From: Piromyces finnis finn
Taxonomy: Eukaryota; Fungi; Neocallimastigomycota
Length of the DNA stretch: 64,000 nt
Assembly (NCBI GenBank): GCA_002104945.1
Contig: MCFH01000007.1
Location: 186,001-250,000, forward strand
Direction: 5' to 3'
Within the stretch, counting starts at the first letter, position 1. Every line of letters begins with the position of its first letter. The translations under genes and the position numbers were made by a program. Below the pieces are notes generated by a model. It did not search any database. It saw only the letters and a list, made by a program, of their open reading frames with translations, and was not told the origin of the DNA. Positions 35,617 to 48,699 of this stretch are shown here, piece after piece.

Positions 35617-36270
35617 TTATAATAAAGTTTTTTTTTCCCCAAAATTAATAAACAAATATATTCCAAGTATGGCATTAAAGCCTACCGCAGAAAAAACACT
35701 AAATCTTTCAATAATACCAAAGTATTCTTTAGGTACTATTCCTTGACCTACAGCACCCACAAACATCATTATTAATGCTATAAATGCCAAAATACTAATT
35801 ATTCTTTCTTCAACTTTTTTAAATCCTGCAATAATAATACATATTAAAGATATAATTGATAGAAGAACTACTAATATTGTTACAATAATATGCATAATTT
35901 CTTGAAATGTTATAATGTCTTTTCCACTTTCGGAAAGAGGAAATGAACCATATCCAACATTTGAAATCCATTGCATTATTGTAAATATATATATTCCAAT
36001 TTTAAATATTTTAGAAAATTGTTTTTTTTCGGATATATGGATTGAAACACAACTACAACATACAACACTACAAACATTATATAAAGAAGCTATTCTGTTC
36101 CATGAAGATTTTGAAGGTGCATTGTCAGCAGAAAGATCACTAACTGCCTGCTTCTTCCAATTATATCCTGGATAATAAAAAGGCGAAATAATTACAGCTG
36201 CGGTATATGAAATAAGGGCTATCAGTCCGGAGAGTCCAAACCAATTAATTAGTGTTTTATTACAATTCAT
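35617..36270 (-). CDS. DUF998-family membrane protein, bacterial type, intronless, 217 aa
   Basis: Hydrophobic intronless ORF with YPGYNWKKQAVSDLSA, an internal His (MHIIVT) and C-terminal FGIIERF, as recalled for Firmicutes DUF998 proteins. Confidence 0.75.
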   Translation of the reverse strand: MNCNKTLINWFGLSGLIALISYTAAVIISPFYYPGYNWKKQAVSDLSADNAPSKSSWNRIASLYNVCSVVCCSCVSIHISEKKQFSKIFKIGIYIFTIMQWISNVGYGSFPLSESGKDIITFQEIMHIIVTILVVLLSIISLICIIIAGFKKVEERIISILAFIALIMMFVGAVGQGIVPKEYFGIIERFSVFSAVGFNAILGIYLFINFGEKKTLL

Positions 36271-37517
36271 TTTTTATAGTGTTTATTAATATAATTAATA
36301 ATTATTCTTTATAATTACTTTATTATTTAATTTCAAATGTTTTTTTTTTTTTTTTTTTTTTTTTAAAGAAAATTTGCTAATAATTATTGTTATTTATCTT
36401 AAAATAATTACACTTTTTTTAATTTTTCATATATATATTTTTTCATTTACTTAATAATAATAATTATAATACTAATAATACTATTCATAAATTCTGATAA
36501 TTATTATTAATCATTTTAATATATTATTTATTGGGTAATTTTTGATTATTTTCTAGAGTGTGATTGGACATTGATAGTAATCATACTTTTCCATATATTA
36601 CTTAATATATAATAAAATCAATTCAAATTAATAAAGTATTTTTTAACGTTTATTAAATGATTATAATACATATTTTATATATTCCTAATATTAATACTCT
36701 TTTTTAAATAATCAAATATATTACTTTATATTTTAATATATTTGATAAAATTATATAATGATCCAGTAATTATTATTTTAAAAATAAATATATAATAGTT
36801 TTTTTTTTTTTTTTTTTTTTTTTTTTCTTTACAAAAAAAAGTTTATAAAATATAACATATTTATTTATTTTTATTTGTGGGGTAAAGTAGAATGATAGTA
36901 AAATAATGTTAAATTAGAGATAAATGTGGTATTGAAAGGAAAGAAAAAAAATAATAATGATGATTAGAAAATGAATGTTATATAATTTTTTTCTAAAAAA
37001 AAAGGAATATAAAGTTACAAGTTGTAAGTTTATTATAAATAGTTAATAATTAATTATGTATTCTTATTGTTAAATGAATCGAATCTTTATTTATATATTA
37101 TAAAGAAAAAATAATATTTTAACTTAAAAGTATTGATTAATATAAAATAGGCGTAGTATATAAAAAATAATTAATATATTTTCTTAAATTGAAAATAATT
37201 AACTTTTTATTCCTTTTACATTAAACATAAATTTAATTCATTATTCTAATTGTATTTCATTATTATTTTTTATCTTTAAAATATATATCATATAATTATT
37301 TAATTCTTTATAAATCTTTTTATTTGTATTATTTTATAAATTTTATATGATATAAATATTAATAAACTTATTGTAAAAAATTATAAATCGAAATTGTAAT
37401 TAATATAAATATTTATTTATATTTGATTTTATTATTAATTAATATTTTATGATGTATCATTTTAGTATATTAATTATTAATTAAAAATTATTTATTTCTA
37501 TATAGTTTATATAAAAG

Positions 37518-40500
37518 ATGAGAACTGAAACTATTGTTTTACTTAAGGGTGATGGTATCGGTCCAGAAATCGTTACTGAAGCTCAAAAGGTTTTACAACT
37601 TGTTAGTGACGCTAGAAAGGAAGCTAACGGTTTTCAATTAGAATTTAAGGAAGAATTAATTGGTGGTATTGCTATTGACCAAACTGGTAAATATAATAAA
37701 TAATAATTAATATATTTATTTTAAAATTAAAAAATGTTATTTTGAATATGATTTTTTATTGCGTGATATGATAATTTTTAAAAAAATATGTTTTTTAAAA
37801 TTTTTGATGTTACATAATTTTTACTTAAGATTAAATGGGGATTAAAAATATGAATAATATAAATAGAATATTAAAGTATAAAAATATAATTATTTTTTAA
37901 ATAGGTTCACCATTACCAGAAAAAACTCTTAATTCTTGCTTAAACGCTTCTGCCGTTCTTTTAGGTGCTGTTGGTGGACCACAATGGCCACGCCCAGCTA
38001 CTCCAGAAAATCCAAATCCACCAAGACCAGAACAAGGTTTATTAGATATTAGAAAAAAGATGAACCTTTTCTGTAACATTAGACCATGTATTTTCCCATG
38101 TGAATCTCTTAAGCAAAAGAGTCCATTAAAGGAAGAAATTGTTAAGGATACTGAATTTATTGTTGTTAGAGAATTAACTGGTGGTGCTTACTTTGGTAAG
38201 CGTGAAGAAGAAAATGCTGAAGGTGTTGGTAAGTAAAAGTATGTAGTAAGATGCTTTAAATAAGCGAAACCAAAAATCTAATTTATACAAATTTATATAA
38301 TTTGTAAAATTTGGTATATTCTAGCTTACGATACTACTGTTTATTCTGTTCCAGAAGTTCAACGTATTACTCGTATTGCCGCTAAGCTTGCTCTTGCTCA
38401 TGAACCACCATACCCAATTATCTCTATTGATAAGGCTAATGTTTTAGCTTCTTCTCGTCTTTGGAGACGTGTTGTTACTGAAACCATTGAAAAGGAATTC
38501 CCAACTGTTAAGTTACAACATCAATTAGTTGATTCTGCTGCTATGATTATGGTTAAGAACCCATCAGCTCTTAATGGTGTTCTTTTAACTGAAAACATGT
38601 TTGGTGATATTCTTAGTGATGAAAGTAGTGTTATTCCAGGTAGTTTAGGTCTTCTCCCAAGTGCTAGTTTAAACGGTTGGGGTAAGGAAAGTAATGGTTT
38701 ATATGAACCAATTCACGGTTCCGCTCCAGAAATTGCTGGTCAAAATATTGCTAACCCAATTGGTACTATTTTATCTGGTGCTATGTTACTTCGTTACTCT
38801 CTTGGTCTTGAAAGAGAAGCTAAGGCTATTGAAAAGGCTGTTGCTAAGGTTTTAGATGATGAACAACACGGAGGTTTAAATATCCGTACTAAGGAACTTG
38901 GTGGTAATGCCACTACTACTGAAATTGGTGATGCTATTTGCAAGGCTCTTGCTGATGAATTAAACCAATTAAACATTGAAGATTATGCTGATAAGGTTGA
39001 AGTTGATAATGAAGGTCGTCTTGTTTTATCTTCCCTTAAATTCAAGCGTCGTCCAATGACTCTTTGTGAAAAGATTATTTGTAATTCTGCTATTGGTTTA
39101 CCAGCTCCATATGATGTTAAACCAGGAGATATGGTTTGTGTTAAGGTTGACTGGACTATTGCTTCTGAATTAACTTGGAAGGGTATGGAAAAGACTTATG
39201 ATGCTATGGGTCGTCCAGGTGTTAACCGTAACGACAGATTCTGGCTTGCTATTGACCACACTTGTGATCCATCTATTAACGATCAACCAAAGCCACAAGC
39301 TTTAATTGCTGCTTCTCGTCAAATTCAAAAGGAAGTTGGTATTAAGGATTTACACGGTCCAAATGAAACTATTCTTCACACCGATTTCTACCGTTACCGT
39401 GCTCTTCCAGGTCAAATGATTTGTGGTGCTGATTCACACTCTTGTTCCGCTGGTGCTCTCGGTAACTTCGCTGTTGGTCTTGGTGCTGCTGATGTTCTTA
39501 TGCCATTAGTTACTGGTGAAACTTGGTTCAAGGTTCCAGAAACTTGTGAAATTCGTTTTGTTGGTAAGCCAAAGTTCGGTATTACTGGTAAGGATATTAT
39601 TATTCACGTTCTTGGTGAATTAAAGAGAAATACTGTTGGTTTCGAAAGAGCTTGTGAATGGACTGGTCCAGGTCTTAAGTATTTAAGTTGTGATGATAGA
39701 TTTGCTATTGCTAACATGAGTACTGAATTTGGTGGTATTGCTGGTGTATTCCAAGCTGATGAAATTACTGCCAACTTTGTTGCTAAGCGTAGTGGTGACA
39801 ATGCTAACTACAAGGATGGTGCTCTTTACTTCCGTGCTGATGAAGGTGCTCAATACTCATCATCTCACATTATTGATTTAAGTAAGGTTGAATCAAGTGT
39901 ATGTATCTACCCAGCTCCAGATAACGTTTCACCAGTTGGTGAAGTTCTTGGTAAGGAATTAGATGGTTGTTTCATTGGTGCTTGTACTACTGCTGAAGAA
40001 GAACTTATTTTAGCTGGTCTTGTCCTTGAAGCTGGTTTAAAGAAGGGTTATGTTCCAGTTTGTAAGGGTAAGAGAAAGGTTACTCCAGGTTCTGCTTCTA
40101 TTTTAGCTAGACTTCGTGAACTTGGTCTTATTGACGTTTATGAAAAGGCTGGCTTTGAAGTTGGTGCTCCAGGTTGCAGTTACTGTTTAGGTATTGCTGC
40201 TGATCGTGCTGGTGAAGGTGAAGTTTGGTTATCTTCCCAAAACCGTAACTTCAAGAACCGTATGGGTAAGGGTAGTATTGGTAATGTTACTTCAGCTTCT
40301 TGTGTTGCTGCCTCTAGTTTCGATATGAAGGTTACTGATCCAACTGAATTACTTGAATCTATTGACAGAAACAAGTGGGAACAATTCCGTCAATTCAATG
40401 TTGTTAAGGGTGAAGATATTGTTATTTCTGAACCAAGACCAATTATTGCTAAGGCTGGTAGTAACTCTAATGTTGATAAGGTTGAATCTAAGAACGTTAT

Positions 40501-41080
40501 TATTAACGGTAAGATTCAACGTTTCGAAGATCACATTGATACTGATGCTATTATTCCAGCTGAATTCATGCCAGGTACATCCGATGAAGATTTAGGTACT
40601 CACTGTTTCCAATATGTTCGTCCAGAATTCCGTCAAAAGGTTAAGGAAGGTTCTACTGTTGTTGTTGCTGGTGTTGGTTTTGGTAGTGGTTCTTCTCGTG
40701 AAGAAGCTCCAAGAGCTCTTAAGGGTTCTGGTGTTCAATGTGTTATTGCTAAGAGTTACGCTTTCATTTATGGAAGAAACCAATACAACATGGCCTTATA
40801 TGGTATTATTATTAATGATGATGCCTTCTACGAAATTGCCACTGAAGACAAGGAAATCCACATTGATATTGCCAACAGAATCGTTAAGATTGATGGAAAG
40901 ACTTTCCCATTCCAATTAAGTAGTATGGAAGAAAAGCTTATTGAAGGTGGTGGTGTCACTGATCTTTACAGCAAATACAAGAACGAATTATTCAGAGTTA
41001 CTATTAAGCACGCTCTTGAAGCTGATCAAGAAAGAGCTTGCAAGAAGGCTTGCCTTGAAAATGACAACTTAAACTGGTAG
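37518..41080 (+). CDS. LEU2-LEU1: Fusion of 3-isopropylmalate dehydrogenase with an isopropylmalate-isomerase-like dehydratase (large + small subunit), 1082 aa; exons 37518-37686, 37905-38228, 38325-41080
   Basis: IPMDH motifs: [53 protein letters not shown]. These continue with no stop into [25 protein letters not shown] (three Fe-S Cys), [11 protein letters not shown], then the small-subunit motifs IDTDAIIP and FGSGSSRE. Exon sum is 3249 nt = 1083 codons. Confidence 0.95.
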
Positions 41081-41679
41081 ATTGTTTACCTCACAAATTC
41101 GCATAATAAATTAACCCACAAAAATCAAAATTTCATATGAAAGTAATAGTCTAAATTTTATAATATGTTTATTTTTTATATTGAAATACTAAATTAATTT
41201 TATAAACTTTTTAAGTAAGCAATTATTAAATTTAGAAATTGTTATTTTTAAGAATTATAAATTTATATATATTTTTTTTAAATTTTAACTTTTTATTTAT
41301 TTAAAAAATATTAATTATTAAAAAATTTGTTAGAAAAATAGAAAAAAGAATGTTAGAATAAAAAACAATAACATTTATTTGAAAAATTAAATTTTTTAAA
41401 AAATAATTTAGAATATAAATAAGATGAACTAAGAAAACGAAAAGTAAAAAAAAGAAAAAACTAAATATAAGAAAAGCCCTATTTTTAAATAATAAAATAA
41501 AAATCTTATAACTTTATAAAGATTGAAATAATAATAATGCAATAAATTAATTAATAAATAAATAAAAAAAAAAAAAAAAATAAAAAAAGTAGTGAAAAAT
41601 CTCTTATTTTCTTTTTTTTTTTTGAAGTTATTATAATTGTGTCAAATATGTGTGATCTTATTAGATTACATATAATAAT

Positions 41680-47779: not shown

Positions 47780-48699
47780 ATGGCCCACTCTCCACGTAAT
47801 AGCTTTTTGAAACCAGGAATCGCTCGTAAGTCCCGTTCTAAGACTTTCGGTCTTCACGCCCTCTACAAGAAGAACAAGGCCGCTATCGCTGCTGCCAAGC
47901 CAGAAGCTCCAAAGACCATCACCAAGACCGTCGGTGGTGCTAAGAACGGTAACACCAGAGTTGTTCCAGCTGTTAAGGCTCCACGCTTTTACCCAGCTGA
48001 AGACGCTCCAGTTCCAAAGGTTAACCGTAAGACCGTTGGTACCGCTACCCTCCGTAAGTCCATTACTCCAGGTACCGTTCTCATCATCTTAGCCGGTAGA
48101 TTCCGTGGAAAGCGTGTTGTTTTCTTAAAGCAATTAAGTTCTGGATTACTTCTTGTTACTGGTCCATACAAGGTTAACGGTGTTCCACTCCGTCGTGTTA
48201 ACCAAGCTTACGTTGTTGCCACTTCTACTAAGATTGAACTTCCAGCTGTCGCTGAAAACATCGATGACGCTTTCTTCCAAAAGAAGGCTGAAGTAAGTTT
48301 AAAATAATAAACTTGATATTATGTATAAAATGTGATTTAGATAATAGAAAATGTGTGATAGTATGATAAAATACTGTTATAAGCATTCGACAGGATGATA
48401 TAATTAGATACTTTTATGTATAAAAATTCAATATATATATGATAAATATTACAATTGGGAATATAAATTATATCATTAATATATAAGTATATATTAAATA
48501 AGTATGAAATATATTAACAAATTTAAATTTACTAATTTAATAAATATTATAGAAGAAGGATGCCGAAAGAGTTGCTGCCCAAAAGGATGTTGATGACAAG
48601 ATTCTTGCTGTTGTTAAGAAGACTCCTTTATTAAAGGCTTACCTTAACGCCAAGTTCACTCTCACCAAGGGTCAAACTGTTCACAACATGAAGTTCTAA
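47780..48699 (+). CDS. RPL6: 60S ribosomal protein L6 (eL6), 219 aa; exons 47780-48292, 48553-48699
   Basis: [65 protein letters not shown] and C-terminal KTPLLKAYL...MKF. GT-AG intron. Confidence 0.97.

Follow-up and report, generated by a model that had tools for sequence, protein, structure and literature searches.

A fused gene of the anaerobic fungus Piromyces finnis predicted to encode isopropylmalate dehydrogenase and isomerase on one chain

Results

Gene structure and transcript

The stretch of DNA analysed here, 64,000 nt of Piromyces finnis contig MCFH01000007.1 (positions 186,001 to 250,000 of the forward strand; hereafter the window, whose own numbering is used throughout), carries at 37518-41080 a gene that joins a LeuB-type 3-isopropylmalate dehydrogenase to a complete two-domain iron-sulfur (Fe-S) dehydratase. 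The fusion is transcribed as a single mRNA, and it is the sole LeuB and the sole isopropylmalate isomerase candidate visible in the P. finnis genome. We consider it likely that its product is a bifunctional enzyme that serves the leucine branch in the cytosol.

The coding sequence lies on the plus strand in three exons that together make up 3249 nt and specify 1082 amino acids. Exon 1 (37518-37686) starts with the ATG at 37518, encodes residues 1-56 plus one base and matches positions 2-48 of the TIGR00169 model, and exon 2 (37905-38228) matches positions 51-147 of the same model with 129 bits. Exon 3 (38325-41080; 2756 nt including the stop codon at 41078-41080) continues without interruption from the middle of the dehydrogenase to the end of the dehydratase as a single open frame of 917 codons. 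The two introns, of 218 nt (37687-37904) and 96 nt (38229-38324), both have GT..AG ends. A Pfam search of the exon 3 frame returned, in order, the C-terminal part of Iso_dh (160 bits), Aconitase (230 bits) and Aconitase_C (53 bits), the remainder of the Iso_dh domain being encoded by exons 1 and 2. The 917-codon exon and its domains thus bear out the original prediction, made from the letters of the window, that a single frame links isopropylmalate dehydrogenase with a full Fe-S dehydratase, large and small domains included; the protein length of 1082 residues, the third-exon size of 2756 nt and the linker sequence that it gave were all exact, the quoted linker lying at residues 378-407. The joined translation is identical to the NCBI protein (P0001) entitled "3-isopropylmalate dehydrogenase [Piromyces finnis]", and exon 3 was 100% identical to that entry in a protein word-index search; the name of the public entry conceals two thirds of the protein.

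The whole window is very A+T-rich. The flanks of the gene are stop-rich and contain 13-25% G+C, as against 35-40% in the exons and in the 38-41 kb region, which excludes a chance open frame. An in-frame TAA is located two codons 5' of the ATG at 37518, so that an N-terminal presequence or extension is not possible.

Transcript evidence came from sequencing runs. A 3168-nt contig from run X4 matched the window in three blocks (37505-37685, 37904-38227 and 38324-40958) with GT..AG joints at both introns and with no mismatches or gaps, and it crossed the linker (38963-39046) unbroken and without a stop. The RNA label of run X4 is a guess; the absence of both introns from the contig shows that it derives from complementary DNA (cDNA). 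A cDNA across the linker had been named beforehand as a check on the prediction, and this one spliced contig supplies it. Loose letters at the 5' end of the contig match the window only at 36853-36880 on the plus strand, a non-coding 5' exon of at least 28 nt, which leaves an intron of about 625 nt in the 5' untranslated region; this intron ends with the AG at 37504-37505 and lies in extremely A+T-rich sequence (36853-37517). When words of 37450-41150 were sampled, four runs of this organism contained 85-88% of them, which is the share expected for spliced mRNA. The bridging contig was obtained from X4 only, X1-X3 having yielded short repeat-like pieces across the locus, and the contigs are uninformative on expression level and transcript ends. 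Orthologues with 88% and 83% identity were found as intronless full-length open reading frames on 3.3-3.7-kb contigs of four further runs, and these are independent fused transcripts of related fungi.

The dehydrogenase half

Residues 1-377 (37518-38962 on the plus strand, including both introns) form what, judged by models and motifs, is a canonical LeuB. This half exceeds the TIGR00169 equivalog cut-off of 353.2 bits with a score of 460.4, the match spanning model positions 2-346 of 349, and it scores 368 bits with the solved bacterial isopropylmalate dehydrogenase 3U1H as against about 155 bits with homoisocitrate dehydrogenases. The motifs R-P-E-x-G-L-L, I-R-K, N-I-R-P, R-E-L-T-G-G-x-Y, D-K-A-N and G-D-I-L-S-D were all found, at residues 97-117, 144-154, 200-205, 232-238 and 253-264 in the alignment to 3U1H and 2AYQ. 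Retained with them are arginines that bind the substrate, the catalytic Tyr and Lys, aspartates for the metal and the Glu-x-x-Leu-Leu of the isopropyl-group pocket; the roles given here are those described in the literature on the Thermus enzyme. In its full-length TIGR00169 match and its motifs the P. finnis LeuB resembles free-standing LeuB and yeast Leu2, with 60-74% identity to free fungal LEU2 proteins, and it differs from them in being the N-terminal 377 of 1082 residues.

The dehydratase half

Residues 406-1082 make up a complete enzyme of the aconitase superfamily. The large, LeuC-like Fe-S domain occupies residues 406-838 (39047-40345, plus strand, as are the features below) and the small, LeuD-like swivel domain residues 890-1040 (40499-40951), the latter with the G-S-S-R-E motif and matches to 2PKP and 3VBA. 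Between them is a connector (residues 839-889; 40346-40498) of low conservation whose predicted local distance difference test score (pLDDT) is 63-68 in parts. Both Pfam gathering scores were passed, PF00330 with 230 bits versus 28.7 and PF00694 with 53.1 versus 22.8. The cluster cysteines C718 (39983-39985), C782 (40175-40177) and C785 (40184-40186) are in columns that are invariant in 30 homologues, as are D475-H476, D534-S535-H536, N804-R805, R810 and S954-S955-R956.

The family of this half was examined with curated models. It did not reach TIGR00170, the model of the LEU1/LeuC type (144.3 bits versus a cut-off of 560.25). Its top-scoring large-subunit models were the archaeal-type TIGR02086 and PRK00402, whose cut-offs were missed as well (271.7 versus 410.15 and 286.9 versus 385 bits, respectively), and TIGR02087, the archaeal-type LeuD/DmdB small subunit, was reached on exon 3 with 117.2 bits versus 108.95. 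The closest solved structures are the subunits of the Methanocaldococcus homoaconitase and isopropylmalate/citramalate isomerase, 4KP2 giving 213 bits. By these scores the dehydratase half is assigned to an archaeal-type isomerase/homoaconitase-like clade and not to the yeast LEU1/LeuC type. The "LeuB-LeuC-LeuD" label of the original prediction therefore holds in that a complete large and small dehydratase follows LeuB; the assignment of that dehydratase to the LeuC/LeuD (LEU1) type fails on the TIGR00170 score.

Three other assignments were tried and rejected. Homoaconitase fell short with both of its models (TIGR00139, 182.4 versus 529.9 bits; NF040615, 231.4 versus 550 bits), and the recognition loop has no Arg. 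Aconitate hydratase likewise failed (TIGR01340, 139.4 versus 825.35 bits; PRK07229, which was among the highest-scoring models, 273.7 versus 612 bits). A lysine-pathway fusion of homoaconitase and homoisocitrate dehydrogenase was discarded since the LYS4 and homoisocitrate-dehydrogenase-like genes of P. finnis are separate and the N-terminal half is clearly LeuB.

In the methanogen enzymes a short loop of the small subunit determines specificity, according to the part of the work of Jeyakanthan et al. (2010) that is relayed in PMC7308503. Alignment to 2PKP and 3VBA places the corresponding substrate-recognition loop, with its E-F-M-P-G, at residues 903-915 (40538-40576). The loop reads Y-L-R-T in the methanogen homoaconitase, Y-L-V-Y in the methanogen isomerase and F-M-P-G in P. 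finnis, which has Pro where 2PKP has Arg and 3VBA has Val; F-M-P-G is an uncharacterised loop type. The absence of the carboxylate-binding Arg fits a hydrophobic substrate. F-M-P-G is kept in nearly all members fused to LeuB, that is, the loop accompanies the fusion.

Leucine-pathway genes in the P. finnis genome

A six-frame search of the whole assembly, the counts of which are lower bounds, detected five aconitase-family loci: three mitochondrial-type aconitases (TIGR01340), one LYS4 homoaconitase (contig C24; 579.5 bits versus a cut-off of 529.9) and the fusion gene. In the same census TIGR00170 was approached by no locus. Three Iso_dh loci were present, namely an NADP-isocitrate dehydrogenase, a homoisocitrate-dehydrogenase-like gene and the fusion gene. 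As the census uncovered no other LeuB or isomerase, the fusion is the only visible route for steps two and three of the leucine branch. A bacterial/plant-type 2-isopropylmalate synthase (LeuA) is also encoded in the genome, and a related anaerobic fungus has been cultured in a completely defined medium (PMC8561657).

The three TIGR01340-type loci (C164:466560-467867, C130:11092-12374 and C157:121680-123262) belong to a strict anaerobe that bears hydrogenosomes. One of them has an in-frame TAG or TAA within its six-frame match, which may be an intron or the mark of a pseudogene.

The linker and the C-terminal tail

An alignment of 30 homologues delimited the linker to residues 378-405 (38963-39046, plus strand), and its length was found to differ between lineages from about 0 to 30 residues, being near zero in Blastocladiomycota and Physarum. 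The AlphaFold2 model had a mean pLDDT of 87.7 and a predicted template modelling score of 0.77, with confident packing between the domains. In this model the linker has a pLDDT of 82-90 and the last helix of the dehydrogenase continues to residue 386, which suggests that the predicted connection between dehydrogenase and dehydratase is ordered and not a loose tether.

The protein ends in a helix and a disordered tail (40952-41077, plus strand) that terminates in L-N-W (41069-41077); AlphaFold2 gives residues 1070-1082 a pLDDT below 50. The terminal W is nearly invariant in the eukaryotic members and L is usual at position -2, a typical ending being L-A/S/D/N-W, and neither the tail nor the terminal W was present in the 80 bacterial relatives examined. 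A C-terminal [LIM]-[DES]-[WF] is the signal recognised by the cytosolic Fe-S assembly targeting complex, as shown on yeast Leu1 (10.1101/2023.05.19.541488). The L-N-W tail of the fusion, from its sequence, is likely a recognition signal for this complex, and the fusion protein would be cytosolic.

Distribution and phylogeny

Database clusters with the same architecture number more than 100 and represent several protists and most of the fungal phyla outside Dikarya. The fungi that bear it include chytrids, Blastocladiomycota, Zoopagomycota, Mortierellomycotina, Glomeromycotina, Endogonales, Neolecta and the sanchytrid Amoeboradix, and divergent extra fused copies occur in Fusarium, Clonostachys, Penicillium and Aspergillus. 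Beyond the fungi, the fusion is present in the nucleariid Nk52, the choanoflagellate Salpingoeca urceolata, Physarum and Petalomonas. The fusion is thus no peculiarity of P. finnis, the same arrangement occurring in many early-branching fungi and protists. In Catenaria anguillulae (L035:3833-7239) and Dimargaris cristalligena (L036:3762-7106) the public annotation has two genes at the locus, one Iso_dh and one of the aconitase family; no stop interrupts the frame at the junction in either species, indicating that these models split a fused gene.

Trees were built by quick maximum-likelihood searches. The tree of the dehydratase half roughly follows the fungal phylogeny, with Piromyces grouping with chytrids (support of 98 in the Shimodaira-Hasegawa-like approximate likelihood-ratio test) and the bacterial single-chain enzymes outside. 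In the LeuB tree, fused forms and the free LEU2 proteins of chytrids, Mucorales, basidiomycetes and yeasts are intermixed, so that the two kinds are not a pair of old paralogue groups. A single clade of free forms was rejected by the approximately unbiased test with p about 1e-43, the group having been named after the tree was seen. No aconitase-family gene was found beside the free chytrid LEU2 genes. On the evidence of these trees the P. finnis fusion appears to be old and vertically inherited, with no recent transfer from rumen bacteria.

Two Mortierella species were compared at syntenic sites. In Mortierella sp. GBAus27b (L029:1-10433), homologues of ILV2, ILV5, enoyl-CoA hydratase and ILV6 are followed by the fused gene. 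At the M. alpina site (L026:1468-7236), ILV5 and ILV6 are accompanied by a free LeuB with 90% identity, and nothing remains of the dehydratase. The pair looks like a recent gene fission or truncation.

Related proteins and neighbouring genes

Several proteins of 1340-1573 residues have four parts, a LeuA catalytic domain (without the regulatory domain), LeuB, and the large and small dehydratase domains. They are P0105, P0110, P0111, P0114, P0115 and P0120, one from the vampyrellid Leptophrys vorax and the others from ENA and Logan contigs. Each such chain covers the entire leucine-specific branch, with its parts in the order of bacterial leuABCD, and the recognition loop of these proteins carries an Arg (M-L-V-R-P or M-L-D-R-P), not F-M-P-G.

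Free-standing eukaryotic dehydratase paralogues (P0124-P0214) form separate clades with recognition loops of their own: E-F-L-x-E-N in oomycetes, often in two copies, and I-D-K-C/M in Mucorales, Umbelopsis and some yeasts. Aspergillus and Penicillium have extra paralogue copies. Nearly all of these paralogues end in W and would, by that ending, be cytosolic Fe-S enzymes.

Among bacteria, single-chain relatives about 650 residues long that carry the loop G-E/Q-F-C-H-L were found in at least 236 species representatives, from Myxococcota, Planctomycetota, Ktedonobacterales, KSB1, Calditrichota and Gemmatimonadota. Within 6 kb of the bacterial gene (loci L037-L116), an Iso_dh-family gene was found in 14 of 80 cases and an HMGL-like synthase gene in 17 of 80. 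This neighbourhood hints at an uncharacterised 2-oxoacid elongation module; the neighbours are only 25-35% identical to LeuB and LeuA and therefore say little about specificity. No leu genes were found beside the two closest bacterial relatives.

Leucine genes are not clustered around the fusion in P. finnis, its neighbours in the window being unrelated. The nearest are a DUF998 membrane-protein-like open reading frame on the minus strand (35620-36270) and an exon of ribosomal protein L6e on the plus strand (47780-48304).

Discussion

We propose that the two halves of the P. finnis protein act one after the other in the leucine branch. The C-terminal module would convert 2-isopropylmalate to 3-isopropylmalate by dehydration and then rehydration on the [4Fe-4S] large and swivel domains, after which the LeuB module, at the N-terminus, would use NAD+ to turn 3-isopropylmalate into 2-oxoisocaproate by oxidative decarboxylation. 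Isopropylmalate dehydrogenases are dimers, so the fusion protein is expected to be dimeric; it would associate through the LeuB half and carry two isomerase modules. The Fe-S cluster would probably be inserted by the cytosolic assembly machinery upon recognition of the disordered W-ending tail. The substrate of the dehydratase half, the cytosolic location, the dimeric state and any kinetic benefit of the fusion, be it proximity or channelling, are what we infer for this protein, and channelling of 3-isopropylmalate is purely conjectural. The bifunctional role is supported by the related proteins in which a LeuA catalytic domain stands ahead of LeuB and the dehydratase, and by the Mortierella sp. 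locus, where the fused gene adjoins homologues of ILV2, ILV5 and ILV6.

Several points weigh against this proposal. The dehydratase half as a whole reached no curated NCBIfam cut-off. F-M-P-G matches neither the characterised isomerases nor the characterised homoaconitases, and we infer specificity from context; we know of no enzyme-assayed member of the fused dehydratase clade. The genome counts on which the argument draws are lower bounds. In the tail, L and W fit the published signal, whereas the Asn at position -1 is outside the published D/E/S set, for which reason the targeting signal is graded as likely only. Finally, M. alpina, a relative of the fusion-bearing Mortierella, has an isomerase of the LEU1 type (PMC8880518). 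Fused and LEU1-type isomerases thus coexist in the Mortierella group, and the fused dehydratase may be redundant or otherwise employed in some fungi.

The foremost alternative is that the dehydratase half uses another 2-hydroxy-acid, such as citramalate, a longer 2-alkylmalate or an aromatic homologue, and that the fusion serves a different route of 2-oxoacid elongation; the isomerase step of leucine synthesis would then be missing or be carried out by something else. The unreached equivalog cut-off and the uncharacterised loop type would accord with such a role, as would the free-standing paralogous clades with other loops in oomycetes, Mucorales and yeasts and the bacterial relatives that are sometimes located near Iso_dh and LeuA-like genes only distantly related to LeuB and LeuA. 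We nevertheless regard this alternative as unlikely, given that LeuB is unambiguously identified as the fused partner, complete with the motif for a hydrophobic substrate, that LeuA is present in the genome with no second isomerase candidate in the census, and that anaerobic fungi grow in defined medium (PMC8561657).

It could also be argued that the polypeptide is a precursor that is cut in the linker into a separate dehydrogenase and isomerase, since the linker differs between lineages in both length and sequence, and that of Piromyces includes K-F-K-R-R. However, R-R-P is the conserved N-terminus of the dehydratase, found also in free-standing and bacterial relatives, and Blastocladiomycota and Physarum have nearly no linker to be cut. 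Moreover, the linker is predicted to be ordered, and there is no secretory-pathway signal that would expose the fusion to a dibasic protease. Cleavage of this kind is, in our estimate, decidedly unlikely.

Anaerobic fungi hold many bacterial genes, and the order of the domains is that of the bacterial operon; both facts would be in keeping with a leuB-leuC-leuD operon having recently been transferred into anaerobic fungi and fused after arrival. Yet in the trees both halves fall among chytrid and other fungal sequences, three spliceosomal introns interrupt the gene, and the closest bacterial dehydratases, at about 50-57% identity, have no such tail and no leuB attached. These observations do not support a direct origin from a bacterial B-C-D operon, and a recent transfer, which the trees contradict, is very improbable. 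That the fusion is an assembly or gene-model artefact, or read-through of two adjacent genes, has practically no chance of being true: the locus does get mis-modelled, but as a split gene, as in Catenaria and Dimargaris, and the 917-codon frame, the mismatch-free spliced contig over the junction, the four independent cDNA contigs from relatives and the more than 100 orthologous fusions refute it.

The predicted bifunctional enzyme can be set beside known systems. Fungi have multi-step biosynthetic fusions, such as AROM, His4 and the Trp enzymes, that place consecutive steps of amino-acid pathways on one chain. The P. finnis protein resembles these in its arrangement; unlike them, for which characterisation exists, the LeuB-isomerase fusion had no published biochemistry that we found. 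The M. jannaschii homoaconitase (4KP2, 2PKP) and isopropylmalate/citramalate isomerase (4KP1, 4NQY, 3VBA) share with the dehydratase half the cluster ligands, the G-S-S-R-E motif and the position of the loop, whereas they are heterodimers of separate subunits with Y-L-R-T or Y-L-V-Y loops and have neither tail nor dehydrogenase. The bacterial single-chain dehydratases, which form the sister group of the eukaryotic clade, also have large and small domains on one chain and are 50-57% identical; they differ in their G-E/Q-F-C-H-L loop, in the lack of a LeuB fusion and of a terminal W, and their function is uncharacterised. Leu1 of Saccharomyces cerevisiae is alike in its reaction, which is the one proposed here, in having both domains in one chain, in its cytosolic location and in its W-ending tail (10.1101/2023.05.19.541488), but it belongs to another branch of the aconitase superfamily and is not joined to Leu2.

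The original prediction had allowed that the architecture might prove to be widespread and already described. Widespread it is; as for a description, none of a LeuB-isomerase fusion was found in open-access full text, including PMC2904702, PMC8262921 and PMC8880518, which is not proof of absence. The fusion itself, the non-LEU1 lineage of its isomerase and its breadth across eukaryotes are not in the searchable literature, while the gene sequence was already public and automatically annotated. Both halves belong to well-known enzyme families and fusions of consecutive steps are common in fungi. The chemistry is ordinary; its arrangement is unstudied and informative about evolution.

With regard to its history, one may tentatively suppose that a fused LeuB-isomerase, its isomerase not being orthologous to yeast LEU1, was ancestral in fungi and their unicellular relatives, that the free LEU2 of yeasts, mushrooms, Mucorales and many chytrids is the product of repeated fission with a LEU1-type enzyme taking over the other step, and that the gut fungi kept only the fused form, with both steps on one Fe-S-dependent polypeptide and maybe with direct transfer of 3-isopropylmalate; we put this forward as a possible scenario, short of a probable one. 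The interleaving of free and fused LeuB forms provides a dated series of fissions, one of them between two Mortierella species.

There are practical consequences as well. LEU2-style auxotrophic markers in anaerobic fungi or chytrids would need to reckon with the fused gene, and pathway reconstructions that seek LEU1 would wrongly score the isomerase step as missing. A natural isomerase-dehydrogenase fusion is a ready part for the engineering of 2-oxoacid chain elongation, and it offers a clean system in which to ask if joining consecutive enzymes gives channelling. The textbook picture of separate LEU1 and LEU2 genes derives from Dikarya; in this strict anaerobe, and apparently across much of the early-branching part of the fungal tree, one fused protein is used instead, and its isomerase half stems from another branch of the aconitase superfamily than LEU1.

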